Positions 13,101 through 31,933 of a stretch of 32,152 nt of DNA are shown here, one piece after another. The DNA is from Perkinsus chesapeaki ATCC PRA-425. Its lineage: Eukaryota; Protista; Perkinsozoa. Position 1 is the first letter of the stretch, and each line of letters starts with the position of its first letter. The translations under genes and the position numbers were made by a program. The stretch lies in NCBI GenBank assembly GCA_013115145.1, contig JAAPAO010000408.1, positions 1-32,152 of the forward strand, given 5' to 3'. The notes below the pieces were generated by a model. That model saw only the letters and a list, made by a program, of their open reading frames with translations. It was not told the origin of the DNA and ran no database searches.

Positions 13101-16100
13101 TATTCTGGTATTCCTCACGGGCCAGGAGGAGATAGATGTCGCAGTAAAGTTGACTAAGGAAAGGATCACCGATCAAAAGTGAGAAACTGGTCAGAATGTA
13201 TTCAATATTATTTCTCTGTATTATTTCGCGTTCGCCATGGGAAAGCATCTGGCCTCTGCCTTTAAGCGTTCGGAAGTTTGCTGAACCAATAGCAATAGCC
13301 GCACTACAGCGTTTCTCTGTCGTGTTCTCACTTCTGCGCCGGTGCGCACCGAGTTCCCGGAAGAATACTGAATTATCCTAGCCGTATTCGACCACGTCGG
13401 AGTCGATTTGTATCCAGTACCACTTATGCGAAGATCCTAAAGACTGCTACCCAATCTCCGGATGCACGCACTCTTTTATCCGACGCCTGACAGGCGCATC
13501 TAAATTATCCTCCGACCATGATTCAAACATCCGTAACTTCGCTCTCCAATATGACCGGGAAATGGCATAGTCGAGAGCTCGTGCTTCTGACAAACTGCAC
13601 ACTGCGCCTCGGTTTTTTTACACTGTGATTCCGAAAATAGTTTATAACTTTATTAGATAATTTTCTTACAAACCCGAGAATGTGTTCACATTCTTCGCAA
13701 TTGTGCGGTTCATTTTGCTCCCTCGTTGGTATTTGCTCTGTTCTTGCTCACGATCAAGCTTGGGTTAGGCTATGACGCCTCCTTTTCAGTCGGCCCGTCG
13801 GGGGAGGTCCTCTGGTAGCATTCGCGCTCCATTCCGGGTTGCCCGTCGGTTTACAACTGGAAGCTTTGAAACCGGTGGCTCGAGGTAGCCGCAAAGTTGT
13901 CTATTCCACCAACGTGGCTGAAAGCGGTGTGACTATCCCTAACATTGGCTTCGTGATCGATACGGGGTTTGTTAAACAAGCAGTTGCAGCGGCGCCAAAC
14001 CATCATGCACTACTGGTAAGTCTAATCGGAAAATTGATATTCGTCAATTGCCCGTTTTTTATCGAACTGTAAGTTGCCGCATAATTTTCTGTATGGAAAT
14101 GTGCACTCCCCATATGATAGAATTCTTGAGAGAGTGGCATCGGTCCTAAGCTAAAGGGACGGTCTTTCTACCGCCGTGTGAATCACTCCGATCTTCAAAC
14201 TAGGCTCGGAATTACGGCTGGGCAGGAGAATCGCTATTTACAGAAATCTGCAACCGGATCTGCAGCCACCTGAGCGATATGTAACGTTGTTCCGTTATTT
14301 GTCTACGGTAGACAGGGTAGACAGTCCACCCGACCACAGACCCTCTTTTGTGCAGGGATCCTGAATTCTGAGCTCCTGTGCCTTTTTGAAGGGATACTCC
14401 TACCAAGGTCAAACTCAAGGGCTCTTTTGCAGCACCCTGTATTTTTACAGGAAGTCGAATCCGGACTGCATTAGGCTCCACGACATGAATAACCTTCATC
14501 GTGACGGTCACATATCCAAATGGAACCCTGGCCGCGCGCTGCCGAATATAACAACCATGGAACGGTGGATGATGAAACGGTTGATCGATATCTCCTCGTA
14601 TCCGCCTGGTGAAAATAGGTATACCTCTTTAGGCTTTCGGCGTACAAAGCCGCTCTACGGTGGGAAATAACGATAACTTGCTCATTTGAATAACAAATTG
14701 GAATACTCTGTACTGCAGCGCCATGTGACCGACATGTAGGATACAGGGCCTGTAGGCTACATGTCGGTCACGCACGCAGGCGCACCGCTGCCGGTGTCGC
14801 GTTTACCGGAAGCATCTCACCGAGAGTTGATGATGCCGGCGATCTGCCAGGGCTTTGCTTATCGCCATTCGTGGCCCGCCGTATACTAACCCCTGAGCAG
14901 ATTGTTGAATGAGGGCGAAGGGGCTCGTCAGACGATTATTAATATCGAGTTAATATTGCCTGGACGACCGGCCAGGATTCCATCCACTTGCTTAATCTTA
15001 TCTAAAATTATGCTTATACTTCTCTCAATCGTTCAGTGTGGCTCGGCGCCTCAGGCTTCTCGTTGGAACTGTTACATCTTTCCTTCCCTTCAGATCACTC
15101 CTTGCAGCAAGGAGCAACTTGTGCAGCGAGCCGGTCGCGCTGGTCGCGTCTGTCCCGGCACTTGCTACCGACTTTTCCCCAAATCATCGCTTGGAATATT
15201 CCCCGATCAGTCCCTGCCAGAGATAACTCGTACCCCCTCACTATCATCGGTGCTGCTGCAGCTAATATCTCTTGGAGTCCGTAATGTTTGCTCACTACAG
15301 TGGTTGACGCCTCCCTCCGCGCGCGCGATGGAAGCATCACTGGAGGAATTGCGCATGCTGGGTTTCATAGACGACAACGGCGTCGTAGCGGACAAGCGTG
15401 CTGCCGAGCTCCTCCCTCTCAGCCCCGCCCAGGCCAGACTTCTGCTCCTATCGGTTGAATACGGATGTTCTTTGGAGGCAGTACAGCTGGCGGCGCTCAT
15501 GAGCATCGATTCTGTTTGGGTGAAACCGCACAACAGGAACGGTCGGGAACGACTAGCCGCCTGCAAACGGTCGCTTGGAGTTCACGAGGGCGACATGCTT
15601 ACTATGATAAATGTCTACCGGGAGTGGCGAGAAAATGAGCTCTCATCTGACGGCGATAAAGACTGGGCGCACCGTCACATGGTCCACGTCGGGTCGATGT
15701 CTCGAGCATCGCGGATAGCCAACACTGTTCGACGCCAACTCTGTCAAGTTCTGATAGATTCTGGAACGGATGTCAGCAAGGCACAGTCGCAAGTAGACGA
15801 ATCTGCTGGTGGCGATATTGAACCTCTTTGTCGGTGCATCTGTGGGGCCTTTGCTGCTAATGCGGCTTCCCAGGTCAACAACAGTGGACGGTATGTGTCA
15901 ATGCGTGACAAATCACGACATTTACTGATAGGCCAACAGAGCGTGCTGTATGGAGTTCAGAGACCTCCGAATTATGTTGTCTACAGTCACGGTATAGATA
16001 CTGGTGGTCATGCTGGTGCGTACGAGATGATTCACATAAGCCAGATAGAGAGCCAGTGGCTGGTGGACGTCGCCCCATCGTTGTATCGTCGAGGAAAACG

Positions 16101-16107
16101 TAGATGA
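10130..16107 (+). CDS. DHX35: DEAH-box RNA helicase, DHX35-like; multi-exon
   Basis: Inferred exons 10130-10274, 10352-10482, 11131-11188, 11235-11361, 11744-11848, 12371-12572, 12915-13038, 13082-13178, 13790-14015, 15094-16107. Motifs: RLPIY, GSTGCGKSTQVPQ, PRR, VTDGM, MLDDFHER, SSAT, ILVFLTGQEEI, STNVAESGVTI, QRAGRAGR, then HA2/OB-fold-like C-terminus. The N-terminal MSFLPPG resembles the DHX35 FWRPG start. Family call is strong; the ortholog call is moderate. Confidence 0.85.
14725..14771. repeat. 47-bp palindrome with single G centre, in a helicase intron
   Basis: GTGACCGACATGTAG-ga-TACAGG-g-CCTGTA-gg-CTACATGTCGGTCAC. Confidence 0.9.
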
Positions 16108-16168
16108 AGTTTCGACATTCTCGTCAGTTGTTGCGTATGAATTTATTGCGATTATTTGTTAAACGCTG

Positions 16169-16595
16169 ATGTCAGTTAATCGGGTTAATACGCTCCCCCT
16201 CTGCACTCGATTCCTGCTAGTGTTCATGATGCTAATCTCGTCCAGTGGTGTGGCTCCCACCGGTACCTTCGTCAAGTACAATTCCGAGTATTGTCTAGAG
16301 GTCACTTTGTCACATTAGAAAGCCACCTAGTTATTATAGTTAATAGGGCTGAGGATCAAATACGGTCTGCTGCTCTCAAGTTTGTTAAAGAAGCACAAGC
16401 TAATGCGTACCAGATGCCTAAAGAACCGGTTGTACGCAGGTTCTACGAGGCATTGTCAAGTCTTGTAAGGAAGGAGTCGGGCTTAAGCTCGTCGATGGAG
16501 ACTTATCAACATTTGCCTACGATAACAGTGGGAAGGCAATGAAGACTAAACTCCTAGGAGAACAAGCAACATTTCGCCTTGGCCAATGTTCTTGA
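16169..16595 (+). pseudogene. Frameshifted paralog of the 18950-19381 secreted protein
   Basis: Signal-peptide-like start MSVNRVNTLPLCTRFLLVFMMLISSSG. It aligns codon by codon with 18950-19381 (YCLEV, EDQIRSAALKF, MKTKLLGEQATFRLGQCS*), except for two 1-nt deletions at ~16307 and ~16453. These could be sequencing errors. Confidence 0.75.
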
Positions 16596-17195
16596 CTTGG
16601 GCGATCCAGCGTTGGCGATGCCCCGTAATCGTCTAGACACAAATTGTGTCTACTATATAACTCATAATCATTCAGTCGGTCACTTGCAACCTTAGTTCTC
16701 ATGAAAAAGCTACAGACTAGCCACAGACTCTGTAGTACACACGATGTCGGTGCTTAGTTCGCATATGTCCTACCTATCATATGGTCCTTTTCACTTCGTA
16801 ATGGTGTTGCTTTGCTGATCAGTGTCACAGTACCATTGCACTGGCGCTGCTAGTCTAGCAGTGTTGGACGGGGGTATAAGTCAGCCAACAGCCTTGAATG
16901 CTCTCGAATATTTAAGTGGACCTCGTGCATCAACTGGAACAGATGCCGGCAAATCGGCAGTCGATTCGTTGAATTCTCGATGCATCTGTGCGTTACGACA
17001 GCATCTCGACAATGTATTTTCTGAGCAAGCGAAGGGGGGGCTTTCTAACGTCGGGGCACCAACAGTCTGCTGAGTAGATGATGACCCCATCATGGCGTCA
17101 AAATACTTCAAGTCTTATGTGTGTTACGGGGAATGATGCCCTATGACACGCACATAAGCTTATTTCTCGATTCCCCGGGAATCTAAGTTGTTGTC

Positions 17196-17464
17196 ACCCT
17201 TACGATTTTCCCTCAAATTTTCCGTCGGCCTGAAGCCATTTGGACTGATAAAAGCTAAGTCTAGCTGCACCGGAGCGTGACCGGGAGAGGTGCTCGTAAA
17301 ATCTCATGCTGATCTCCATGCTGGCTGGACTGTCACAGACTGTGACTCACAGTTCAACTGTGACTGGCGATTACCTGACGCCGTCAGGTAATAGTACAAG
17401 TAGAGCTGCTATCTCCCAAAGCAGCCAGGGTCATCTCAGACGACCCTTACGATTTTCCCTCAAA
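17196..17464. repeat. 22-bp exact direct repeat
   Basis: ACCCTTACGATTTTCCCTCAAA at 17196-17217 and 17443-17464. Confidence 0.9.
17332..17353. other. Perfect +14 zigzag scar (window GTCACAGT)
   Basis: g TCACAG a CTGTGA c TCACAG t; an overlapping palindrome TCACAGTT-c-AACTGTGA follows to 17363. Confidence 0.85.
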
Positions 17465-17868
17465 ATGGGTTGTCCCCACGTTTTCGGGCCTCCTGATTCT
17501 CGTGGCGGTGCCACGGTGGCGCCATTCGTTTTTCTTCTTAAAGTACGACGGCTTTCACAAACCTAGGAGACTCTTAGTAAGAGTAGCCTTATCACTAACG
17601 AAGACGAAATCCCGGTCTGAAAACAAGCTCTCCCAAGAGCATCTCCAAGTCGATTGTTGTTTTGCATTCTGATGGGCACCGGTTTGAAGGCATTCAGGCC
17701 TCAAGAATGTTCACTGCTGGCGAATCCACCTGTGAAATACCGGCTAGCGTTCGCCTGGCGTTGGGTCGATGGAGAACAAAGCTGTCGATCATGCCCATAT
17801 GTGCTGTGTTGATTATGTTCTTGTCAAGACCGCTACTAATGGATACCTTGGCCATTGGTAGATAAGGA

Positions 17869-17890
17869 GTTCTTACTAAGAACTTCTTAG
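17869..17890. other. Perfect +14 zigzag scar (window GTTCTTAG)
   Basis: g TTCTTA c TAAGAA c TTCTTA g. Confidence 0.85.
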
Positions 17891-18004
17891 AGAAAAGTGC
17901 AAACCTGTGAGTAATCCTCACTGAGAATATAAACGTCTGAAGCCTACACGGGATACCTTATACCGTATGAGCCGTGTGCTGAAGCTGAAATGATATGATC
18001 ATTA

Positions 18005-18026
18005 CATTTGATTCAAATGATTTGAA
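18005..18026. other. Perfect +14 zigzag scar (window CATTTGAA)
   Basis: c ATTTGA t TCAAAT g ATTTGA a. Confidence 0.85.
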
Positions 18027-18949
18027 TGAATAATGAAGTAAACTTTCCCGAAAATCTGCGGACAATTTCAATCGGAACCCCCTAAATAAGATTATGCGGA
18101 TCTTGACGAAATCCGTGAAACAAATCAGCCCGCAACAAGCTCATAGGAAGGCAGTCTCCCTATCAGCTCACTAACAGTATCAGACACTGCTCGTGCCTCC
18201 TTGCACTAGATTAGTAATAGCGCCAAATGCCTTTCGAATGTGGCTCGTTTTTCTTCCCTGATCGCGCCTGCTACGAGCCTAGTGGAGAGGCTCGCGATGC
18301 GTACGTATGCAGCTTTCCAGCTTGCATTGTAGGCCGATCAATCTCATGGTGAGACATAAAACTTTTCGGCCCTACTTCACTCGCTCCTCCACAATATGCC
18401 AGGCTTGCAGCGCAACTTCATCAGAATATAGCATGTTTGACCAGGTATGATCTTGTAGACAGTATGCTCTCCATTGCAGGTCTCTGGGGAAGGACTTAGA
18501 ATCGTCTCCGCAGTGAAATAGTCTTACGAAGCTCAACTGGTAGGCAACCACTGAGACTTAAGCCATGCCTGTGAGAGGCTCATCCTAGCATGGTGCGTAT
18601 TCAGTTTGTTGGGAGCTTCGAGGGGCTTCGAGAAACAATCCTCCGCTGAATATTCCTCATCTTTCGCGGCGTGGTGGCGCACTACGAAGTCAGGCGTTCG
18701 GTGTCCCTAACATGCACACACATACACATCATCGCACATACACACGAACAACTCCGCAAACTCGTATCTCTACAATTCGCGCCTCAACTTATACCCACAC
18801 AGCTTCAACAGCTCCAAGCGATTCTCAATTTTCTTTTCACAGTGGGCAGGTCGGCGCCTGTAACATAACTGTTCTGCGCCGCCCAGGGGCTTCCATTCCC
18901 TAGCGCGTCACTTAGCCCCAACGACAGAGATTCGAGCTTTCGGGAAAAC

Positions 18950-19381
18950 ATGTTCCCCAACACCAAGATGTTCTCATATCGTACCCTATTCGTGTTGATG
19001 CTGATGACGGTAACCTTGTCAAGCGGTGTGCCTCCCCATGGTTCCTTCTATAAGAATTCCAAGGACTCCAAGTATTGTCTAGAAGTCGCCTGGGTACCAT
19101 TACAAAGCGATCTACTTATTATAGTTGATCGGGGTGAGGATCAAGTACGCTCTGCTGCTCTCAACTTTCTTGAAGGACCTGGAGCTGATGTGTACCGGGT
19201 TTCTGGAGAGAAGATTGTACACAAGCTCTACGAGGCATTTCTCAAGTCTTGTAAAGAACGAGTCGGACTCAAGCTCGCCGATGGCGATTTATCAACATTT
19301 GCATATGCTAGAAGTAATGGAACAATGAAGACTAAACTCCTAGGAAAACAAGCAACGTTTCGTTCCGGCCAGTGTCCTTGA
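18950..19381 (+). CDS. Small secreted hypothetical protein (143 aa, single exon)
   Basis: Intact ORF with hydrophobic N-terminus (RTLFVLMLMTVTLSSG). Three Cys are conserved in the tandem paralog at 16169-16595, and the 3' flanks are homologous. Confidence 0.8.
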   Translation: MFPNTKMFSYRTLFVLMLMTVTLSSGVPPHGSFYKNSKDSKYCLEVAWVPLQSDLLIIVDRGEDQVRSAALNFLEGPGADVYRVSGEKIVHKLYEAFLKSCKERVGLKLADGDLSTFAYARSNGTMKTKLLGKQATFRSGQCP

Positions 19382-20327
19382 CTTGGACGAGGTAGCAACG
19401 ACGATATGATCATCTCGACACAGATGTACAACTTATCCTCAGTTATTCGGTCTCATCTGGCAACCTCAGTATCGACTCAGCTACAAAGGATGCCGGTCCG
19501 TAGTTCACATAAATCTTACCTTTTTTATTGTAAGTATTCATTTTATCTCCATTACGACTAATGCTCAGTCGAGTTCGAAGTGTGGCCAGTCCGGAAACAC
19601 TATAAATTGACCTAACACAATTGATACATTCCTCAACTGAATCAAAGTAAGCTAGCGATATAGCATGATACTCTAGATTAGACTGAGATAGCTATCGTAG
19701 ACACGATAGCTTGTCAAAACGGCTCAGTGCAATGTGAAACGTGCATCGCACTGGTGCTTCGCACTGCACCACGCAACTCCATGCATTCTCGAATTTTCCC
19801 GTCGAGTTGAGATAGTACTGTATTGTGATACTCAACGGTAGTACCGCTGAAGTTTAGTGATTGAAGAGTGGAGTCAGTGCGATGTTGAGAGTTAGTCATC
19901 CCGAGTCACGGCCGCAACCATGCAATTTGGAAGAGCCAAAATTCACGAAATAGGGTCTACGGAGTGAAAGATAATTATTTGCTGAATTAATCGTCTCCTC
20001 GTTTTCCCACTTTTCTCTTATACCCCCGAAAACTCGGAATTGCATGAAATTTCAAATTTCGCGAAATTTCACGCTTGAAATTTTTCCCGCTAGATTTTAC
20101 GAAATTTTCGAACCCTGGTCACAGACGATGTTGAGATCGAAAGTTTCATCAGACAGCTCGACGGTTCAATTCCAGGCAGTGATCTGAGGTATCTACACTA
20201 CGATGGCAAAAATATAGGGGGAAGCCTGGCTTTCGCCTGACGAAAGACGCTTGCGGTCCTCACGGTTTCGAAAACAAGTGAAGATTACCAATACTCCTCA
20301 CCCGTTCCGTGGAAGAGCGAAAGAGTT

Positions 20328-20358
20328 CCTGTGACTCATAGGACTCACAGGCTGTGAG
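20328..20358. other. Double-hairpin scar with filler (window CCTGTGAG)
   Basis: CCTGTGA-c-tca tagga ctcacag-g-CTGTGAG. Confidence 0.7.
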
Positions 20359-20776
20359 AGAAGCGATGAGCACATCCTTCAAAGTTTTCTTCATATTGCC
20401 CAGTTAACGCTTTACCGCATGATCAAAGAACGTATCTTATGGTTCTTGCCTAGTCGGCTGTGATTTCATCAATGATCTTCGCCCTAAGGTCAGCGTTGTT
20501 GAGTTTGACGAGTATCGAATATGCACCAATGAGTCAATGGCAATGACTTTAGTAAACTTTAGTGAGTAAATTAGGGCAGTCTCCCACAAACTGCCCGCAT
20601 TATGGACGCGATGCGCGGTAGAATAAGTTGTAGACCTACGCGACAGTTCTGAGGTGATTCATTAGCACACGTGAGGTCCGTATGGCCCAGACTGGGCCGC
20701 CAAGTTTCTCGGCATACTAAGAACGCAAATCATCCACAGAGGACATGCTAGTTCATGCACTGCTAGTAGCATTATG

Positions 20777-23700
20777 CTATTCCGTCTCAAGACATAAGTA
20801 TCCACACTGAGAGCCTACCACTGACGTCGCCTCGTCCTCGCTTCCGGGCTCAGGGAGATCTCTAGGATTCACTTCCAAATTTGGCGGGCATTCTTGTGAA
20901 ATACACATACGGTGGTCCTCCGGCACGAATAGCACCAAAGGGAACTCCCAGCTCATATAAATTCTGTCCTGACCGAAGAATCTCGCCATTTCTCGTTCAA
21001 CATATTCATTTCTATTCTGGCGTGCTTCCGGACCATACCCTGACATCCGCGGTGGCCCGCTGTATGCCCATGTACCACCCTTTTCTTTCATAGTAGCTAG
21101 ACTAGTAATCTTAACATCAGCTCCCCCATCCGCTGAGTTCAATGGAGCAATACTTCCTCTATTGCCTGGTTCATTAAACTGCATCACCGAATACATCGTC
21201 GCAACGCTATTAACTTTGTGTGCGAGTTGCTGGAAAGTCTCAGCGCGTTTATCCTGCGGATAAGAGCGCTCGTAACCGAGATGCGTACGGCTACTGGAGA
21301 GCATCGCCTCGTTGAAACCAGGGAAGTATCCCTTCTCATTGATAAGCTTCGAAATATCTTCAGATGCATAAAAGCCGTATTCATCCTCGCCGGCGCCCGG
21401 CGCCGTCTCGAGAACCAACGCAGTGCCAGAGGGAAGATCCGGAAGCCCCTGGTCGACAGCCTCTTTCACTTTCTCGTAATCAACGACTATCCACTGCGAG
21501 TTGTACGTGCCACTCGGCACGTCGCACGTCTCCATTAAGTCCTTCCACGACGGTGTGTCGTGTGCCAATGAAACGGCTATCATAACTCTGATGAAGTCTG
21601 GAGTAGATTCAGGCGTCCCGAATCGGCCTGGTTTGAGGATATTAGTAGTCGTCTCAAATGACACCAACCATGTTGAAGGACGCACTACCCAATCATCCGT
21701 ACCTGATAAATTTGGAAGAAATCATTGGAGGCCACTCACAATACTGTACAATGTAACAGCAACAGTGCACATCACAGCATGCAAGAGGGGTTTCTGGTAC
21801 AACATCTGTACAATGTAACAGCAACAGTGCACATCACAGCATGCAAGAGGGGTTTCTGGTACAACCTCTGTCACAAGTTGTGGACCACAATGATTATTCT
21901 GAGGACAGATCCGTCCACCGAATAAAAGCAAAAATGAATCTACTCAGCTCTAATGGAGAATAGTAGAATTCCTAACCTTCGCTGAAATCGGGCCTCTCTC
22001 TAACAATACCGAGAGTTCCTCTCTGAAAACTCTTTACTGCTCAGATTGCTCGTCTGATATCTTTATGATGAAATAAGCTGAGCCTTTAGGGTAGTGTATA
22101 GTGAGTCACCATTGGTGACCATACCATGGTCCAAGCAAGATACTTACTGCTTATGCATCCGGGATAGCTGGAGAACTGCACGGTTGCATCCGACCTCTCC
22201 TGCATGACCATCGGAGCTGAGATGTCTTTCATCACTCGAACCATTTCGGGAAAGCTTTCCCATGTGGTACTTGAAGAAGGATTATAGCGGATGAGAAGCC
22301 TCTATCGAATCCACGATCGTCGAGGAAAGATTTGAGTGTCACTTATCGCAGTAAGTCCTCTATTTTGCTCTTGAATACGCGTGGGCCACGCGGCTTGGGT
22401 GTGCGCCTCACACCCACGTGGCGTAGCGTGGCGTGGCGCATCACTCTGTGAGGTCTTATTCCAAAACCCAAAATGGTTCAGTTGGACTATCCATTCTATC
22501 TGCAACTTCCAGCAAGGGTCGGTACCGACAATCTATCTCGAAATATTGTCGTACGGAGCAAGTTCGTTGAGCCTCTGCCCTTGAGGCCCTCACGTCTCAC
22601 AAAGTGCATCACACAGAAGTAGCAAAGCCGCTGTACGGTAGCATAGTTAAGAAAGTCTCCGCCTTACTGAGCCGAGATAACATCGGTAACGACGCCTTGT
22701 TGGTTACGAACCAGTCTGGTTAGAGCGCTGCATCTCTGGGGGACAGAGGGCACAAACTGAGAGCTGCCAGACCGATGAAGACGTATTTCCCGAACTGAAG
22801 GATGTTCTACGCCTGAAGGCTAAACCCTGAAATTGGCCATGAGGGGGCTGCTCACTGATTTGCTCCAGTTCTGGCAACTGACCGTCTGCATTCAGCGCTA
22901 ATATGTCCAAAAAAGATAAAGCTGCCTTCGGAGATGACGAAGTGTACTGAAAGGAAAATATCATTCTCTAGAAAAATATTGGGCCTTCAAACACAGTGCA
23001 GTTGCTTTGTTGCATTTCTCTGATGTATTCTCACAAACGCCCGACACAGTGAGCTTGCGAGAATTCTGACATTTCTCCGGTTTGGAGTCATTGCGTACGG
23101 ACTGGAATCCGATACACCTTCTCAGACTGAGATGACTTGATGCACATGTTCTCGAAATGACTAATGGAAATTTAGACAGAAGGCTATTAGCCTAATTAGG
23201 CTAATAGACTATAGCTATCAGGCTAATGTGCTGTGAATACTTCGATCCAAGTCGCGAGGCTGAGGAGCCCCACCTTGGCTCCTGCGTTTTGTTCCACAAC
23301 TGCATTGTAGCCATCCATTATACCGAGTAATTGGCAATAGTATCCATGAGCGAGATCAAAGTACTCCGCTTCGAGGTGGCACCCCCGATGGTTGTGATCA
23401 CGCTCCATGAAATTATCCAAGATAGGCCCGAAATATCTAAGACGACAGATATTTAATGAAGGAATTATTTCTGAGTCCAACAAACTCTGTCGGTACTAAT
23501 GGGTAGAGCGGAACTGCTCCAATTGAGTGAGCGAAGCTCACTAAAGTTATGCCTATGCTGTTCCTTCGGCTCTCACTGTTCTTTCATCCATATTGCGGTA
23601 GTAGTCCGTTCCTCTCTTCTGCCGATCATTTTCTCCGTGTTAAGATGATAGAATAGCCACATGTACTCCGCCGATAGGAGGCCTTCTAGTGTTCCCATAG

Positions 23701-24278
23701 CATACCTCATACGGAGCAAAACTCATACCGAGCTAGTTCGCTGAAATATTCCGGTAATCAACTACATTCTGTGATAGCGGTCCTCGTTTGTTGCGGGTGT
23801 ATCGAATCCTCCACTAAAAACGCTCCATCCAATATTCTCCCAGTAAGGCGAAAAGGTTGCATTTGCCAACACCTAGCCAAACATGTGGCATCCCGTATCT
23901 ATAGAGTTCCTAACCGGCAGTACTCGCTTGGTTGCATTGCCTGTCGTAACCCGTTCGTCTGACGTGTAGTGCAACTTGTGGGGCTTCGTAGCTGCGAGTT
24001 TGTATATTATTGGAGAAGTTTGGTATCGGCTTGGATTTGTTCTCACCTACAGGCTCTTCAGAATGAGCTAGGATTTGTAAAACATCATCGCCAATCTGAG
24101 GGAATCCTGCCATGCAGTTGTGCCGGAGGTAATCCTGAAATCGTATCCACTGGCGGTTTATATCCAGCCGCTGGCCTACCACAAACTTGGGGAAGTCAGC
24201 ATCTGGTTCCGAATACAAGGATATGCAATATGCAAGCTGTATAATGAAGACGTATAAAGCGAGCCACACCTCGGACAT
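20777..24278 (-). CDS. Phospholipase B-like protein (PLBD/LAMA family, Ntn-hydrolase); multi-exon, exact termini uncertain
   Basis: Signal-like first exon MSEVWLALYVFIIQLAYC, then AMGTLEGLLS, YCQLLGIMDGYN, LALNADGQLPELEQ, RCSALTRL (N-terminal nucleophile Cys), ISAH|TTW, QFSSYPGCISS|TDDW, ETT, SGTYNSQWIVVDY, VLETAPG, DVKITS and SGPP, in the canonical PLBD order. Confidence 0.87.
21744..21867. repeat. 62-bp tandem duplication in a PLBD intron
   Basis: CTGTACAATGTAACAGCAACAGTGCACATCACAGCATGCAAGAGGGGTTTCTGGTACAAC(A/C)T repeated twice, one difference, inside intron ~21703-22147. Confidence 0.95.
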
Positions 24279-24549
24279 TTGGTATGGTGATTAATTAAGC
24301 TACAATCCACAGACCTTGGGCAGTCCGCACCGTGGTGGCTAATGGAGACCATGGCCGGCTCCATCCTTCATATCAGGAAATCTGATCTACTTCGTTTTCA
24401 AATAGACGGAATATCAGCGTGTGGAGCGAGTTCGGAACTTTGTCAGATGTCGCCTTCAAGTTCGCGTGGTACTATCAAACGCACGTTTGACGATACACAC
24501 TGAAGTTTAACAGAAGTTCTGCTCACTCATCGCAAAGGAGTGATAAGGC

Positions 24550-24641
24550 CTCTCTACTAGACTCTAGTTGCTAGAGTTGCTAGAGTTGCTAGTTGCTCTC
24601 TACTAGTCTTCTGTTCTCTAGTAACTAGAGAGTCTCTAATT
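24550..24641. repeat. CTAG-rich cluster of direct, tandem and inverted repeats
   Basis: CTCTCTACTAG at 24550 and 24596; CTAGAGTTG tandem units between them; overlapping odd palindromes TCTCTAGT-a-ACTAGAGA-g-TCTCTAAT. Confidence 0.75.
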
Positions 24642-24802
24642 GCGATCGCTACTTCCTTTTTTTTCAATCCGGGTCTCTATTGGCCCCATTGACCGTCTCA
24701 TATCAATGGCTTCACTCCTCGGGACTCCCAAGTCGGGAGCTTACATCCCCGGCTGCGTATGACCATCCCCGCACTCCGGAATTAGGACTAGAGGTCTTCC
24801 TA

Positions 24803-25856
24803 CTATGTGAGTTCTACTAGAAATTTTGTATTATCTGTTTTGTGCCACGGTGACATCGGCACCTCAGTGGATAGCGGGCTAGTAAATCCAAAATTACAGT
24901 CATATTGACGGACGTGGGGTATCATTTTATCCGTGCAAGTAGCCGCAGATAGTGTGGGAAAGAGATAGAGTAAGTTACTCTGAGTAACAGACCCGTGTAC
25001 GGAAATCAGGCTTTTAAAAACGCAACCATTCTCGCAAGATAAGTCAGCAGTAGGCGTGTCAGAGTAACAGTGAACCACTAAAAATGCCTTGTCACAACTT
25101 CAAACTACATTATCAGTACTACTAGCCTCACAGCGTAACACAACGAATTGCCTCCACAGTTGCACGCATGCACAAAAGTAGCCTTCTTTCAGAAATAAGG
25201 ATACACTCAGAGCAGATATCAAATGAGGTAGGGCGCGACTCGCGCCGCGCGAGTGACCATAGACTCTATGACCACTATATGACTCATAGAGCTCCCTGCC
25301 GCGCCTAGTGAGACACGGCGTGTCTGACACGCTGTGAGAAGGACGTCTACTAAACTCGGGTCTTGAACGATACCCCGACAACTGGGTCGCGTGTCGCGGT
25401 ATCAGTTGATGAATTCCTAAGAATAACACAACAAAGGAGCTTGAGCCAGAATACCAATACTACGACCCTGGGACAATAGATATAACTTATATCATATAAG
25501 CGCACTACCTGCGCTTAAGTTGTGCACCAATCTATGTGTACGCAAACACAATTACTCTGCCCAATTAATCGATATTGAGCTCGACACCTATAAAGGGAAT
25601 GGCGAAGGTTTATTCCATCAGACAACCCTCCAGGATATAGTTGTGAGGAGTTGATAACAAGTTGTGGGGAGATCAGCAATATAGCAAGATGGGGATCAAT
25701 CTGGACGGTCCAGACTGGACCCACAACACGCAAGGCATGCGTGCGACCATAGCTACCTACAACGGCGCCTAAGGAAATGCAAACTGACAGAGGTTCGGCC
25801 AGAACCTCCAGAGAGAATCGGCAAAGAATAAGGAATGCTGGACATGAGAGTCTCAT
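24803..25856 (-). CDS. Hypothetical secreted protein, probably multi-exon or decayed
   Basis: ORF 25856-25515 starts with a signal-like MRLSCPAFLILCRFSLEVLA; a Cys-rich ORF lies at 25078-24803. No family recognised and the linkage between the pieces is not established. Confidence 0.3.
25232..25253. other. Perfect +14 zigzag scar (window GGCGCGAG)
   Basis: g GCGCGA c TCGCGC c GCGCGA g. Confidence 0.8.
25311..25332. other. Perfect +14 zigzag scar (window AGACACGC)
   Basis: a GACACG g CGTGTC t GACACG c. Confidence 0.85.
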
Positions 25857-25864
25857 GATGAGAC
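25843..25864. other. Perfect +14 zigzag scar (window CATGAGAC)
   Basis: c ATGAGA g TCTCAT g ATGAGA c. Confidence 0.85.
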
Positions 25865-26135
25865 CTTAAGGTCCTCCCTTTAAGTTTTCGGTATCTTAAT
25901 ATCTAATCCACCGCCTGTCCATACCGCACCTACTTTGTCGGTTTAGCACTTTTCCTTAGGTTTTTGACGTTACCCGGCGAGAGACGCTCCGGGTTCGGGG
26001 GAATCTTCATAGTGCGCAGGCTGCACAGCGCGTCAGGATTCACCAGGTCACTCCCACTGCTGTTTTACGCGCGTCGAATCCTACGGATTTAACTCGGAAG
26101 TAACAACTTGTTACTAACAAGGACCTTGTTGTATA

Positions 26136-27589
26136 ATGAGGATCGCTCCTGGTTTATGTCTCGTCCGATTAGCATCTGCCGTGATAACTATCGAAGAGCT
26201 TCTCGACTCCAAGAGCTTCTCGGCAAGGTACAGAACCTGTACTGCACGTTGTGCGGCCACATTGATCACCGCTGGCTATACCGCACAACCAGCGGCGATC
26301 GACTTGGCTGCTCAGAATTAGTTGTCTTCGAACATTTGTTAAGGTATGACAAAGCCTACAGCTCACCTGTAGAGTCCATGGTTGCCCTGAACGAGTCAGC
26401 TGAAGGACTGCAAGAGGTGGAGCACCTTGAAGCGAACGGTAGGCTGGCGTTCCGTCACCCATGGACTGCGACCACACGGTGGTTTATTCCCTCAGTTCGG
26501 CAGACCGCTGACAAGGTTCGTGCTCCCCCACCACCCGCAGTCGATTGGGCCGCCGCCGGTGCCGTCGGTCCAGTGAGGAATCAGGATACTCTGTTCCGTA
26601 AATGCGACAGCTGCTACGCTATAGCAGCCATCAGTAATCGGATTACTGTAATCCGATTCGAGTCGTGACTTCCACATTTCTTTCAGTCGTGTTGGAGAGC
26701 AGATTCCAAATACAGACTAAAATACCAAATGTGATACCATTTTCAGTTCAACAAATCGTTGACTGCAGCCAGCAATGGGGCAATGAGTAGTCAAATTATT
26801 CCAATCAGCTTACCGCCATACTTTTATTTGACAACTGGGTAGGGTTCTGTTCTTCCAGAGGGTGCAACCGTGGAACGGACTACTATTCGTACCTTTATGT
26901 CAAGGCCAAGGGTATGGTTAATGAATCGAGCTATCCGTACAAGGCAAAGGTGTCTGAGTGCAGAACTTCTATAACTGATAATCCTGCACTGCAGTGTCTG
27001 AAGGTGATCGGTTGAACTCCTCACGGAGTGTGAGTCAGTGCTGGAATTCATGGAAAGGAGGGGGATATCCGCGATATAAGAGCACTAGAGAAAGGAAATG
27101 ATTACAGTCTAATGAGCGCTGTCGCGGAAGGACCCGTAGCTGTACCAATAAACGGTGAATCCAGGGCATTCAACAAATACAAGTCGGGAATCATAACTGG
27201 TAGAGAAATATACGATTGTGGCATAAACTTGGTTTATCTTTTCAGCTGAAGCATGCGGTAAAGGACCCGTAAGTTACGGGCCGTAACTCACACTGTCGTA
27301 ATCGTCGGCTACGGTGTTTCTTCCGAGGGAATGCCGTAAGTCCTTTTTCTATTCCAAGGTATAATATTATGTCAGATACTGGAAGATTATGAACAGTTGG
27401 GGAAAGTCGTGGGGGATCGGAGGCTTCGCATACATCGAAAGGACTGGAACCAAAGTTCCAGAGGGTGAAACACGCCTGCCTGTGGTCGTTGAGCTCTTGC
27501 TAGCCTTTGTTTTGCTAGGCGCATGCAGCATTATGTCAGTGGATCCTATATATCCTGTATTCAAGCTCGGCTTAGCCAGTAGCTGCTGA
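26136..27589 (+). pseudogene. Papain-family (C1A) cysteine protease with an apparent +14 frameshift before the catalytic His
   Basis: I29-like FEHLLRYDKAYSS, then VDWAAAGAVGPVRNQ...CDSCYA (catalytic Cys), FSVQQIVDCS, GCNRG, YPYKA, GPVAVPIN, YKSGII, THTVVIVGYG (His), YWKIMNSWGKSWG (Asn) and IYP. The ACGKGPV exon only reaches THTV if 14 nt at 27273-27286 are removed. The start position is inferred. Confidence 0.8.
27266..27287. other. Perfect +14 zigzag scar inside a protease exon (window CCCGTAAC)
   Basis: c CCGTAA g TTACGG g CCGTAA c. Confidence 0.88.
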
Positions 27590-29421
27590 TCTAGTAATGA
27601 TGACATCTTCAAGTGACCATTTGTGTTAGCTTAGCTAGCTTTGCTGCGACGATGAGGAGTCTCAGATGTCCGTCTTCATCATTCAACGTCTTCCACCGTC
27701 GTGTCGAGTCATCATCTATGAACGCTCAACAGTAAATGGCGGGCCGTTACTAGCGGCCGGAACACTAATTGCGATGTAACCAATATTGCTGGCAGTTATA
27801 AGTTACATTTTTACTTGGCAAGTTCACGTGAGAAAAGACTTAGTCCAAAAGTCGTCGTTCACTGTAGGCGGGGCAGTAGGCTTTCACTTTATAACTTAGT
27901 TTTCAATCATTTTGAAGAGTTTTGCGTAAATTGTGATGAGATGTACCATTTACACCCTTAGGAGGTCCTCCTAGATGTTTTAGGGGACACAATCGAACAG
28001 TGTGGCAAAACCGTTGGGCTGGTCTAATCGGCGGTCGAACCCTCTCGTCGCACAATTAGGGATAGTTGAGTTGGGGCCAGCTAACGCAGGTGTTTTCTTA
28101 CATATTCTATTGCAGTTGGCTATAAACACGATGGGAAACACGTACTAAAGCTAATCACGGTGAATCTTCTAAGACAAAACGATATGATAAAATGTTTTGT
28201 TTCTCCGTTGCGTTGCCGTGCCAGTCACAAGCGGCGCATCCGCCAGAAAGAGGCCTAGAAACGGGAGTGTATCAGCCCGATGAGGCTTCATGCGTAGGTG
28301 CGGAGAAGTTCACTTTGCTGAATGAGTTTCCTGTTGACGGCGCCTCATTCCGTTAGCATGCTCCTCACCAGGTGGGGAGCATGTTCCAAGCAGGTCCTGC
28401 TTACACTGTTAGATCGCGTTTTCCAACCAGAGCAGTCGGGAGCGGGAAGTGGTCTACTGTCAGTGGAGCTACCCCTTACAGACAAGGCGCCACCGAACTG
28501 CATGAGGCCGTAGACCGGTCCGTGAAACTGAGCTTAGGAACGGCTAGCATCGGAGTCGAACATGAGATACTCTGCAAGAGCATCGATAGAGTGAAGGACT
28601 TAGTGAGAAACCGCAGTTAGAGCGCAGTCGGAGCGAGTCGCTCGCAGCGAGTCGGGCCAATAGTCTATACCAGGTCCTGGCTCTGGTCCCAACGGAGACG
28701 TGGTACATCACAGAACACCTCTACGTCAAGTTTGCGCCGTGAGAATCTCCCCAACTATGGTTGGTTTTCGTGAGTTACTAAAACAGGCACAGCTTGTAAG
28801 GATCAGGTAGAATTCAAATCTCTAACAATCCGTTTGCGACGTGCAGCATCCAAAAACCGGCAAACTCGCGAAACACCGGGTTGTAATCCTACTTCAAATA
28901 TGGAGACAGCCATGCGGGGTGACGTACTTCTTCAAGAGTTCAAGAGGCTCGACGTGCCTGCGTACGACTTGCCGTGCCCTTCATCGGTTTTAGGTGGCTC
29001 TTCTGCGTTTGAAACGCAGCGTTTCATTTAACCTCAGCAACCGTAAATTTGTATATCGTGGTGTTGCACCTACAGATTGGCGCCGAAAGTTCCCGCTCGA
29101 ACCAACTCTTCGAGGAATCGTATTGTTGCTGGTAGTCCATTATGTTTTTCCTGGCAATTTTGTGGGGAACATTGTAGATTCTACAGTACTTCTGGAGTAC
29201 GTAGCAACTCATCAGATGAGTCTCATCTGGGAATAGTGTATTTGCCTCCTTGTAATGTCTACATAACGGCATGACATTACATGACACGAAATTACGCCGG
29301 CTTGCTTGTCTGCTTGCTTCCAATACTTGGAATTGAATGTTTGAGAGCTCGAGTCTTAAGTGAACAACATTCGCAAAGTGCTTGATTCTCAGGAGCCTTG
29401 AGCAGCGGTTGTTGTTTCCCG

Positions 29422-30255
29422 ATGGTCACGCGAGAACCGTGCAGCTTTACGGGACACATACGTGCCCGGGGTTCCCCCAAAGTGCCGGTTTACTTCACAG
29501 CTGGCTCACTGGCGTTTGAGCGACCGTGTCCTGTGGCACTCGGCTTATCACCGAAATCTGAGAAATACCTTCACCGAACCCTTATATGTCTGCTCAGCAT
29601 GTTCACTTTCTACTTGGTCTTCAACTTCTTACTTTTCTTATTCAAATATTACATAGCATTTCATTATCTTGCGAACTGGAAGTTGGAAGTTACGAACTTT
29701 GATCACGGACCTGTGCCGCCGGTTACCCCTTGGCGAGATTTCCGTAACCTACCGCGAGGTGCTGATGAGTATGTCAACTTCACTTTCACTCTATCGGTCC
29801 GGAATAACCCGCCATGGCTCAATGTGCATGTTCGGTACGTACACTTGTATTATTCGTTTGGAGATATCGTACGAATCCCGAATGCTCACATAACGTTCTC
29901 GGGCGATTACAGTATAACACTACACCCGCGAAATTATCTAGGTAATGCTTATATAGTTGCCCTCCGTTGCCTTGACTACATCCTCTCCCTTGAAGATCCG
30001 GTGCCTGTGAAGCTGGAGGTTGAATTTGAGCCTTCTTTTTTTGGACAAGGCGTGGGTTTGCTGTCAACGAGCACTTTGATGTATTTTGATATTCCGGTAA
30101 GAGATGCCGCCTTTTCTCGAGAAATGCAAGAGACATGTAAGAAACTGCATCCTAAAGGTTCTTCAGAAATGGGATTGTTCCTGTCCAATAATACGAAGGT
30201 TCACACCAAGGTGACTTGGGCGGCGGACGCAGAGTCCCACGCGCTACCAACTTAG
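29422..30255 (+). CDS. Hypothetical type II membrane protein (TM helix plus beta-rich domain, possibly LEA_2/NHL-like)
   Basis: 278-codon open frame from an ATG that is conserved in the paralog at 31304. TM-like TLICLLSMFTFYLVFNFLLFLF, followed by FTFTLSVRNNPPWLNVHVRYVHLYY. The fold assignment is a weak resemblance only. Confidence 0.7.
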   Translation: MVTREPCSFTGHIRARGSPKVPVYFTAGSLAFERPCPVALGLSPKSEKYLHRTLICLLSMFTFYLVFNFLLFLFKYYIAFHYLANWKLEVTNFDHGPVPPVTPWRDFRNLPRGADEYVNFTFTLSVRNNPPWLNVHVRYVHLYYSFGDIVRIPNAHITFSGDYSITLHPRNYLGNAYIVALRCLDYILSLEDPVPVKLEVEFEPSFFGQGVGLLSTSTLMYFDIPVRDAAFSREMQETCKKLHPKGSSEMGLFLSNNTKVHTKVTWAADAESHALPT

Positions 30256-30643
30256 CACCAAGGCAGTCTTGGCAAGACAAGTAAATGCCGACTTGATGGA
30301 ACCTAATATGTTCAAAGTATAAAACTTATTCCATCCTTTGCCGGTATCATGACGATCTATCTCGAGCTATTAATAGGGCCATCATCAGTGGCCTATTAGT
30401 CGTGCTGATACCAACTCAGCAGTGTTCGAGACTATTACGTTAGGTCGATTAGCGATTATATTGTATACCTTCCCGCAACTTCTATTTTCTGATAGTATTG
30501 TACGCTTTGTGTTATCCTATAGTGCGTCATGCTTCATAACAGTCATAGGCGCATTTCTGACAACCCATCGATCGGATCTCACGCTCAAAAAGGATAACTG
30601 AGCACAGTGCTTCGCGCTAGTAATGGTAATCCAGCATCGCGTT

Positions 30644-30665
30644 GTTCACTGAGTGAACTTCACTC
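30644..30665. other. Perfect +14 zigzag scar (window GTTCACTC)
   Basis: g TTCACT g AGTGAA c TTCACT c. Confidence 0.85.
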
Positions 30666-31303
30666 TTATAGCTACGCTCTTGCACTGTGTGCATGAATGT
30701 TAACAGCAATCTCCCGAGAGACTTTGCTCGCACTGATCCCAGCGTTATTGGTAACCTGCAAGATCAATTGGCAACTTGCCAAGACGATTTCTCAAGTTGA
30801 CTGCGACCTTGGGAACCTCGCATCCACCATACGACTTGAAAGTGCCCCACAAAAATACAATAGGCCATCGCGCGTTGTGGCGCGCGTTAGTCGCTTATAG
30901 TGGCCCGATGGTACGACAAACGAGAACTCGCGTTGAGCAGACAAAGTACAAAATCTGAGCTTTCAGCTGCCGTAGTTACCGTGTATTAGCCCAGCTGTTG
31001 AAGGACCAGTTGAATGTGGGCGCAGTAACGTGACGTGACGTACTTCTCGAAAACGCATCTCATGTCTATCACGTTGGAATTTGGCATTCATGCACGCAGT
31101 ATGTCAGCAACGAGCCTTTGAGATATCGTCCCTTGAGGCTTTGAATCTCTTCTATCTGACAGGATATGCGTAGGGTGCCCCGATTCACATTGAGCTCCTA
31201 CTCCCCTCCTTGGACCCTCTTTAAATCTCGATTAGACGGGCTCAGGTATTCCGAGTTTACTATGCAACTAGTATCAGCCTCGAGAAGAAATCGCTACTTT
31301 CCG

Positions 31304-31933
31304 ATGGCTACTCGACAGCCCCGCAGTTCTCCGGGACACGTACGTCCTCAGGGTTAGTATTATATTTCGAATAGTGGAGGTTGAGAACTTTGACTCTGGA
31401 CCTGTGCCTCATGGTTAAAGACTTTTCCGCGAGGTTCAGATCGCCTCTCTTAAGGCGCCGATCAATACGTCAACTTTACATTAACCTCACCGATCATGAA
31501 TAATCCATCATGGCTTCATGTACGGCTTCACAATGTAGGCTTGCATTACGAGCTTGGGGATATTGTACGCCTTCCAAATGCTGGTATAAATTATACCTTA
31601 TAATGTTTCTCGGTGATGTTAGTATTACTGTCCACCCGCGACCTGCCAATATCAATGAAATTGGAAACCCTTGCCTAAATCATCTACTATCGAATGGAGG
31701 TTCGATTCTGCTCGGCGTGGAGCTTAAAATTGAGCCTCTTTTTGACGTTTTGTAGGCTTACTGGGAACAGACAGCTTCGTGTCGTTCAACAACAGTCGTT
31801 GAGTACGTTGAGAGAGAATGTGTCCTTTTCATGGGAAATGAATGACCGATGCAAGACCCTTCACTCCAAAGAGAAGGAATGGCTTTCGTCATTCAATTTG
31901 GAGGTTCTTACGACCATTAACTTAACTCATTAA
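31304..31933 (+). pseudogene. Decayed paralog of 29422-30255
   Basis: Homologous blocks: MATRQPRSSPGHVRPQG, VENFDSGPVP, GADQYVNFT, NNPSWLHV, LGDIVRLPNA, FLGDVSITVHPR, FSWEMNDRCKTLH. The TM segment is deleted and there are several stops and frameshifts. Confidence 0.85.
31583..31604. other. +14 zigzag scar, one mismatch, inside the pseudogene (window GGTATAAT)
   Basis: g GTATAA a TTATAC c TTATAA t; removing 14 nt restores frame and length relative to the paralog. Confidence 0.8.

Follow-up and report, generated by a model that had tools for sequence, protein, structure and literature searches.

Recurrent 22-nt scars in Perkinsus DNA with the form expected of hAT-like transposon excision

Results

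Genes and scars along the Perkinsus chesapeaki contig

To investigate a stereotyped inverted-repeat pattern in the genome of the oyster and clam parasite Perkinsus chesapeaki, we analyzed the whole of contig JAAPAO010000408.1 (32,152 nucleotides, hereafter the window). A Pfam search of the 18 open reading frames (ORFs) of 100 or more amino acids identified only a helicase, phospholipase B, a papain protease and an MFS fragment. A 285-residue ORF had no hit in a homolog search. No tRNA or Rfam family was found. The phospholipase B and protease genes are separated by a divergent intergenic spacer (24279-26135).

The window contains 15 perfect 22-mers of the form T1-7 + revcomp(T1-8) + T2-8, each of which is an 8-bp site (T) expanded by 14 nt. 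A sequence-only reading had listed eight of these, at 17332-17353 (T=GTCACAGT), 17869-17890 (T=GTTCTTAG), 18005-18026 (T=CATTTGAA), 25232-25253 (T=GGCGCGAG), 25311-25332 (T=AGACACGC), 25843-25864 (T=CATGAGAC), 27266-27287 (T=CCCGTAAC) and 30644-30665 (T=GTTCACTC), together with one-mismatch copies at 6332-6353 and 31583-31604. We confirmed all ten, but found the count to be an underestimate. The seven further perfect scars lie at 24967-24988 (T=AGAGTAAC), 25479-25500 (T=GATATAAG), 25700-25721 (T=TCTGGACC), 26100-26121 (T=GTAACAAG), 26633-26654 (T=AGTAATCC), 29004-29025 (T=TGCGTTTC) and 29207-29228 (T=ACTCATCT). One-mismatch, older scars number nine in total, with the additional copies at 1768-1789, 10931-10952, 17501-17522, 20526-20547, 20684-20705, 24718-24739 and 31780-31801. 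The scar at 17332 lies inside an older odd palindrome with 9-nt arms, making a four-segment zigzag up to 17363.

Seven of the 15 perfect scars lie in the divergent spacer (3.8 per kb, compared with about 0.27 per kb elsewhere). One of these, at 26100, is situated 15 nt upstream of the protease start codon. Within the protease gene, the scar at 26633 straddles a 5' splice site (A|GTAATC) and is spliced out with the intron in the annotated model, and so is harmless. By contrast, the scar at 27266 lies inside the papain-protease exon just before the catalytic-His motif (HTVVIVGYG). The pieces on either side are in different frames, and the annotated model is designated "partial" and stops at 27198. 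RNA runs cover only 29580-30431, where there is no scar.

The pattern is specific to an 8-bp window and is present in the DNA

We compared the observed counts with first-order Markov randomizations of the window, which preserve dinucleotide frequencies. The randomized sequences gave no hits at zero or one mismatch, 0.1 at two, 1.6 at three and 9.8 at four, whereas the observed counts were 15, 9, 9, 15 and 38 for zero to four mismatches. The window also holds nine two-mismatch and about 13 three-mismatch copies. The mismatch classes of 15/9/9/~13 constitute a flat age spectrum, pointing to continuous production and decay of the scars. When the pattern was generalized to window lengths of 4-13 bp, it peaked only at 8, with 15 hits there and 0 at 6, 7 and 9-13. 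A minor 5-bp-window class (4 hits against 0.5 expected) has odd centers.

The regularity of the pattern raised the suspicion of a sequencing, assembly or planted artefact, and the share of sampled words held by the sequencing runs was 0.92-0.95 rather than 1. However, Logan contigs of two DNA samples from different studies (X1, 2020; X2, 2022) span 11 of the 12 scars in 24900-30700 without gaps, including that at 24967, and X2 carries SNPs against the window that show its independence. We then searched 16.5 kb of P. marinus ATCC 50983 (assembly GCA_000006405.1, which is probably Sanger-sequenced) and found three perfect scars and one one-mismatch scar at other sites, again only for the 8-bp window. 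Taken together with the decay of the scars by point mutation, these data refute an artefact.

Center bases and palindromes fit hairpins offset by one base

Requiring only the 6+6+6 forward-reverse-forward core, we found that 37 of 38 center bases are the complement of the neighboring target base. The one-mismatch scar at 6332 is the only one of 19 core hits with a center base off the rule. Odd palindromes with arms of 7 or more nucleotides number 62 against 2.2 expected, a 28-fold over-representation, whilst even palindromes number 5 against 1.8 expected. In P. marinus, the figures are 12 against 1.1 for odd and 0 against 1.0 for even palindromes. This fits a hairpin offset by one nucleotide rather than a flush hairpin, which would be expected of RAG/Transib chemistry together with a 5-bp target-site duplication (TSD).

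An uncollapsed two-hairpin scar was observed at 7307-7351 (T=GTTCCCGC). The left odd palindrome (7307-7327) has 10-nt arms and a center G, the complement of T8, and includes 3 nt of unique left flank. A 3-nt filler follows. The right odd palindrome (7331-7351) has a center C, the complement of T1, and one arm mismatch, and includes 3 nt of unique right flank. Four orphan palindromes have a perfect third copy 9-34 nt away, where about 0.05 would be expected. The orphan odd palindrome at 17370-17392, with 11-nt arms, is a single-hairpin type of outcome, and P. marinus 13122-13146 is a variant with 12-nt arms. The 22-mer is not the single product that the sequence-only reading had proposed, since about 20 further odd palindromes and uncollapsed forms are alternative outcomes.

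We considered whether replication template switching could account for the pattern, as fold-back copying of the nascent or opposite strand can be expected to create forward-reverse-forward triplets. Switch points would vary in such a process, yet only an 8-bp window occurs and the 1-nt skip at both turns is invariant. In addition, two separate palindromes that reach into opposite flanks do not fit a single switch-and-return. We regard this mechanism as very unlikely.

Empty sites, occupied sites and candidate agents

The scar at 25479 lies inside a high-copy repeat, with loose ends behind 25485 in both X1 and X2. Other copies of the repeat read GATATAA|GCGCACTA..., which is the empty 8-mer, providing a paralogous empty site for this scar. 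Only two internal duplicates were found in the window, and neither covers a scar. The P. marinus locus aligns only in the phospholipase B exons, at about 70% identity, so orthologous scar sites could not be compared. The protease exon hit only itself in a homolog search, and phospholipase B relatives other than that of P. marinus are not from Perkinsus.

A scan for an 8-bp TSD flanking at least 10/12 terminal inverted repeat (TIR) matches within 30-8000 bp gave no hits. No transposase, hAT domain or occupied site was found in the 32-kb window or in the 16.5-kb P. marinus locus, which has no promising ORFs. GTGTAC subterminal arrays were at chance level in the window. Thus, the assignment to hAT rests on chemistry alone and remains inferred.

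The target sites show a weak bias. T is present at T2 in 38% of half-sites (26.5% background, p=0.06), Y at T3 in 70% and T at T4 in only 13% (n=38 sites; p = 0.005-0.06 per position, uncorrected). This goes in the direction of the Ac-type nTnnnnAn preference and against the Buster nnnTAnnn preference (10.1101/2022.09.16.508221). Short P-nucleotide footprints (1-6 P-nt), which dominate hAT footprints in plants, yeasts and Candida, are at chance level here. Classes with 2-7 P-nt in total, comprising T1-7 c8 c1 T2-8 and intermediates, gave 1 hit against about 0.6 expected. The repair spectrum is therefore unlike that of any described hAT host, although this is a property of host repair and not of the transposase.

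Discussion

We interpret each 22-mer as probably the footprint of a cut-and-paste DNA transposon that inserted at an 8-bp target, duplicating it, and later excised. The core of this mechanism held up against every test that we could apply, namely two flank hairpins on an 8-bp TSD, each tipped by the complement of the base next to the element, which are opened and annealed through the shared 8 nt. In this model, excision uses hAT-type chemistry, in which a nick one base inside the flank is followed by transesterification, closing each flank into a hairpin. The left hairpin reads T1-7 c8 c7..c1 and the right hairpin reads c8..c2 c1 T2-8 on the top strand. Host enzymes open the hairpins away from the tip, giving 3' tails that end in c8..c1 and T1..T8. 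These tails are perfectly complementary over 8 nt, so they anneal, flaps are trimmed and gaps are filled. Any pair of openings that together expose at least 8 P-nucleotides gives the same +14-nt product. Annealing of the internal 6-nt direct homology would give a precise, invisible excision. The transposon, its hAT-like superfamily and the repair pathway (microhomology or single-strand annealing rather than Artemis/NHEJ-type opening near the tip) are inferred. On this interpretation, scars arise as neutral or harmful mutations, which concentrate in intergenic and promoter DNA. hAT elements appear to favor nucleosome-free 5' regions and local hops, in keeping with the cluster in the divergent spacer.

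The scars share several features with the excision footprints of the hAT elements Ac/Ds, Tam3 and Hermes, for which the hairpin model of Coen/Saedler and the biochemistry of Zhou et al. 2004 provide the framework. These include the 8-bp target duplication, palindromic P-nucleotides centered on the complement of the base next to the element, and the use of microhomology at the joint (PMC5873905; 10.1101/2022.09.16.508221). Known footprints are heterogeneous and mostly 0-3 P-nt, whereas here one full-length product of 8 P-nt, annealed over the whole TSD, dominates in a natural genome rather than at a reporter locus. Ac/Ds footprints in Saccharomyces cerevisiae show long palindrome arms (up to 20 nt), with 88-89% of joints using microhomology after hairpin opening, in data that are experimental and varied (Yu et al. 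2004, PMC321453; Lazarow et al. 2012; as summarized in PMC5873905). V(D)J coding-joint P-nucleotides also derive from hairpin-capped flanks opened off-center, although the odd palindromes and 8-bp window differ from the even palindromes and 5-bp TSD expected of RAG/Transib. In the related alveolate Amoebophrya, introner elements similarly combine short direct repeats with inverted repeats spread through genes (PMC7789003). However, those are introns of 40-1000 nt with family-specific inverted repeats and 3-5-nt direct repeats, while the Perkinsus scars have no sequence of their own. In the literature that we searched, in which the yeast footprints were known to us only in summary, we found no description of this 22-mer or of hAT elements in Perkinsus.

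A Mutator-like (MULE) element, or another hairpin-forming superfamily that makes 8-bp duplications, could produce scars by the same two steps. MULE Muta1/Os3378 forms hairpins on flanking DNA, makes 8- or 9-bp TSDs, and shows TSD-derived homology steering the repair (PMC5499845, PMC5225508). However, Muta1 mixes 8 and 9 bp, which would give 25-mers, and no 9-bp-window scars were found in the window or in the P. marinus locus. The Muta1 hairpin was sized as 43+43 nt, which is flush and predicts even palindromes and a 24-mer, neither of which is enriched here. Furthermore, Muta1 excision with donor TSDs is about 90% precise. We consider a MULE origin unlikely, although a strictly 8-bp MULE would be compatible with the data.

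The scars may alternatively have been made by a host or domesticated hairpin-forming nuclease, or another non-mobile system, without a conventional transposon passing through the site. The outcome is unusually uniform, and no element was seen in 48 kb of Perkinsus DNA that carries about 60 scars of all ages. However, each hairpin needs its own full copy of T1-8, which a single unduplicated 8-mer cannot supply, so a duplication step, meaning an insertion, is required first. We infer that a low-copy element with an excision rate near 1e-5 per copy per division is enough to explain the scar load. Scars break exons, so the process is not benign or programmed. This alternative is unlikely. In a further, also unlikely, form, Perkinsus may resolve every hairpin-capped break by long-range opening plus annealing, implying that it lacks, or does not use, Artemis/NHEJ-type opening near the tip. 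The scars might then be written by a domesticated or otherwise non-mobile hAT-like hairpin nuclease that repeatedly targets open chromatin. The 22-mers would in that case be the trace of a new genome-modifying system, with tens of thousands of sites giving a genome-wide map of its activity.

If the excision interpretation is correct, Perkinsus genomes hold a natural record of transposon excisions with base-pair resolution and rough dating. In most genomes, footprints are too small and varied to recognize. At about 0.5 perfect scars per kb, the record would amount to tens of thousands per genome. It gives a map of insertion preference and a direct estimate of excision rate relative to point mutation, which under steady state is roughly 1 scar per 100 substitutions in this window. 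It also gives a view of how an alveolate parasite repairs hairpin-capped breaks. The repair looks almost purely annealing-driven, which bears on gene-editing outcomes in Perkinsus and its relatives. The scars are frameshifting 14-nt insertions that pseudogenize genes, as for the papain-family protease here, and they add hairpin-prone sequence to promoters and introns. They could also serve as strain markers for a commercially important shellfish pathogen.

Genomic context and scar counts

The contig JAAPAO010000408.1 (32,152 bp) of the Perkinsus chesapeaki assembly GCA_013115145.1 carries four annotated genes. These are a DEAH helicase at 11185-16318 (+), a 143-aa ORF at 18950-19381 (+), phospholipase B at 20777-24278 (-), and a "partial" papain-family protease at 26136-27198 (+). 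The phospholipase B corresponds to the 621-aa protein KAF4660565.1, and its ORF at 20777-21685 (minus strand) matched a Perkinsus marinus protein at 64% identity. A 400-bp segment downstream of the helicase (16210-16604) is 76% identical to the region of the 143-aa ORF (18988-19390), and a 71-nt near-perfect tandem duplication (21744-21876) lies next to the last phospholipase B exon.

To establish the number of scars, we scanned the window strictly for the form T1-7 + revcomp(T1-8) + T2-8, where T1-8 is the 8-bp target. This revealed 15 perfect 22-mers and 9 with one mismatch, which include all ten sites (eight perfect and two with one mismatch) listed in the sequence-only reading. First-order Markov (dinucleotide-frequency-preserving) randomisations of the window gave none. 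Generalising the window length of the pattern from 4 to 13 gave 15 hits at 8 and zero at 6, 7 and 9-13. Mini-zigzags of the same form with a 5-bp window (13-mers) were found at 112, 10062, 23183 and 30771, 4 observed against 0.5 expected with a maximum of 2 in 100 shuffles, whilst the 4-bp window gave 19 against 8. These may be a minor class of footprints from another element, or trimmed scars. For the 8-bp window, the mismatch classes 0, 1, 2, 3 and 4 hold 15, 9, 9, 15 and 38 sites, in comparison to 0, 0, 0.1, 1.6 and 9.8 in the shuffles, although a few of the three-mismatch hits are offsets of perfect scars. This near-flat spectrum is what steady production followed by point-mutation decay predicts. 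Older scars occur across the whole contig, including the first 17 kb, where there are no perfect ones.

Since such a regular pattern could be an artefact, we inspected contigs assembled by Logan from the raw reads of two DNA samples from different studies (X1 and X2), which cover 24900-30700. The X1 pieces, 24900-25448, 25677-26052, 26065-29628 and 29781-30700, have no differences and no gaps. The X2 pieces, 24900-25448, 25677-26012, 25983-27408, 28188-29628 and 29781-30700, have no gaps but carry SNPs, for example 6 in 1426 nt. No variant in which 14 nt were left out was reported at any scar. Thus, 11 of the 12 scars in this stretch are spanned in both samples, and the twelfth, 25479, lies in a high-copy repeat where the contigs break. 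This repeat, of about 250 bp (25391-25641), is present at 40-60 times single-copy depth in both DNA samples. Other copies differ by a 122-nt indel (joints 25467>25590 and 25477>25600), and the repeat has no TIR or TSD at its edges and no Rfam or tRNA match.

We further characterized a 16.5-kb locus (GG687290.1) of P. marinus ATCC 50983 from an independent, presumably Sanger-sequenced, assembly (GCA_000006405.1). This locus carries three perfect scars (5375, 7648 and 9623), one one-mismatch scar and two two-mismatch scars, again only for the 8-bp window. The two loci align only in the phospholipase B exons, at about 70% identity, and the scars sit at unrelated sequences. The process therefore operates independently in both species, and the scars are not an artefact.

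Palindromic architecture of the scars

The 22-mer consists of two overlapping odd palindromes, T1-7 · c8 · c7-1 and c8-2 · c1 · T2-8, where c denotes the complement of the numbered target base. When only the 6+6+6 forward-reverse-forward core at fixed spacing was required, 37 of 38 centre bases in the two species were the complement of the outer target base, where chance is 25% each. Odd palindromes are a general feature of this DNA, beyond the 22-mers. Palindromes with arms of 7 or more and a 1-nt centre number 62 in the window against 2.2 expected, and 12 against 1.1 expected in P. marinus. By contrast, those with a 0-nt centre (even) number 5 against 1.8 expected in the window, and 0 against 1.0 expected in P. 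marinus. Only 29 of the 62 odd palindromes in the window lie in perfect scars, about nine are decayed scars, and about twenty are something else.

Several of those twenty are "uncollapsed" forms, of which the clearest is at 7307-7351. It starts with a 10-nt-arm palindrome centred on G, followed by a 3-nt filler and a second palindrome centred on C. The two share T=GTTCCCGC, and the left one extends 3 nt into the unique left flank (GTA/TAC) and the right one 3 nt into the unique right flank (GGT/ACC). Four orphan palindromes have a perfect third copy of the 7-mer 9-34 nt away, against a per-palindrome chance of about 0.2%. At 17332-17392 the events are nested: scar 17332 sits inside an older 9-nt-arm odd palindrome, and an 11-nt-arm odd palindrome follows 7 nt later, which suggests repeated hits at one spot. 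In P. marinus, 13122-13146 is a 12-nt-arm left palindrome joined to T2-8 through a 2-nt overlap, an alternative repair outcome in the second species. Footprints with fewer P-nucleotides (T1-7 c8 ... c1 T2-8 with 2-7 inserted bases) are at chance level, with 1 hit against about 0.6 expected.

Scar 25479 (T=GATATAAG) is informative on the direction of change. Several contigs from other copies of the surrounding repeat part from the window exactly after GATATAA and continue GCGCACTA..., which is the un-expanded 8-mer followed by the same downstream sequence. This indicates that the 22-mer is derived from the 8-mer by a 14-nt insertion.

A hairpin model for the origin of the scars

These observations fit one model, which was proposed in the sequence-only reading. 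An element inserts and duplicates 8 bp. At excision, each flank is closed into a hairpin after a nick one base inside the flank, such that the tip base is the complement of the base that touched the element. Flank hairpins and 8-bp duplications are the hallmark of hAT chemistry (10.1101/2022.09.16.508221). The left hairpin then reads T1-7 c8 c7..c1, and the right hairpin, read on the top strand, is c8..c2 c1 T2-8. If both are opened on the 3' side of the tip, the two 3' tails end in c8..c1 and T1..T8, which are complementary over 8 nt. Annealing, flap removal and fill-in give exactly the 22-mer, and we reason from the sequence that any pair of openings which together expose at least 8 P-nucleotides does the same. 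This convergence explains why one product dominates. In this model the uncollapsed forms are the cases where the opened hairpins were joined without annealing. Annealing of the internal 6-nt direct homology would restore the 8-mer and leave no trace, so the scars are a lower bound on excisions. A single unduplicated 8-mer cannot supply both hairpins, so a prior duplication, meaning an insertion, is needed. This argues against a one-step nuclease, which we consider unlikely.

The assignment to hAT is the more probable reading, but remains inferred, since no transposase, hAT domain or occupied site with an 8-bp TSD and terminal inverted repeats was found within the window or the P. marinus locus, and the search did not extend to the Perkinsus proteomes. 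The target logo, calculated from 38 sites, is weak. T at T2 (and A at T7) reaches 38% against 26.5% background, pyrimidine at T3 reaches 70%, and T at T4 is only 13%, which goes in the direction of the Ac-type nTnnnnAn and against the Buster-type nnnTAnnn (10.1101/2022.09.16.508221). The main rival is a Mutator-like element (MULE), as Muta1 makes flank hairpins and 8- or 9-bp duplications. However, there is no 9-bp class of scars, the Muta1 hairpin is apparently flush (43+43 nt), and Muta1 excision is mostly precise. A MULE that makes strictly 8-bp duplications remains a possible but unlikely agent.

Load and distribution of the scars

Under steady state and neutrality, the number of perfect scars equals r·L/(22·μ). 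This gives r/μ of about 15×22/32152, or 0.01, which is one scar fixed per hundred point substitutions, a rate that we infer a low-copy element could easily supply. Fourteen of the 15 perfect scars lie outside annotated gene models, and seven lie in the 1.86-kb divergent spacer between phospholipase B and the protease.

The papain-family protease gene (26136-27400) has three scars in or beside it (26100, 26633 and 27266) and otherwise open exons. Scar 26633 straddles a 5' splice site (A|GTAATC), and the annotated mRNA splices it out, with the protein reading ...YAIAAI|IVLESRF across it. Scar 27266 lies in the exon that encodes ...GKGPV and, after the scar and in another frame, HTVVIVGYG, the catalytic-His motif of papain-family enzymes. 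The deposited model is "partial" and stops at 27198. This looks like a recently disabled gene, and no RNA contig covers it in the two small RNA runs. RNA contigs from two 2015 runs do cover 29580-30431, in a stretch with no annotated gene (29398-30431). The 285-aa ORF there has no Pfam match and no homologue in 5.8 billion proteins, and paralogous contigs with 17-21 differences exist for 29419-29805. The scars behave as mutations, not as functional elements.

Hairpin-derived palindromic footprints are well established, and long palindromes with microhomology are known for Ac/Ds in yeast. A single full-TSD annealed product, dominant and written about once per 2 kb across natural genomes of a protist genus, did not turn up in our full-text literature searches. 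The interest of the scars lies mainly in what they offer to transposon and DNA-repair biology in alveolates.
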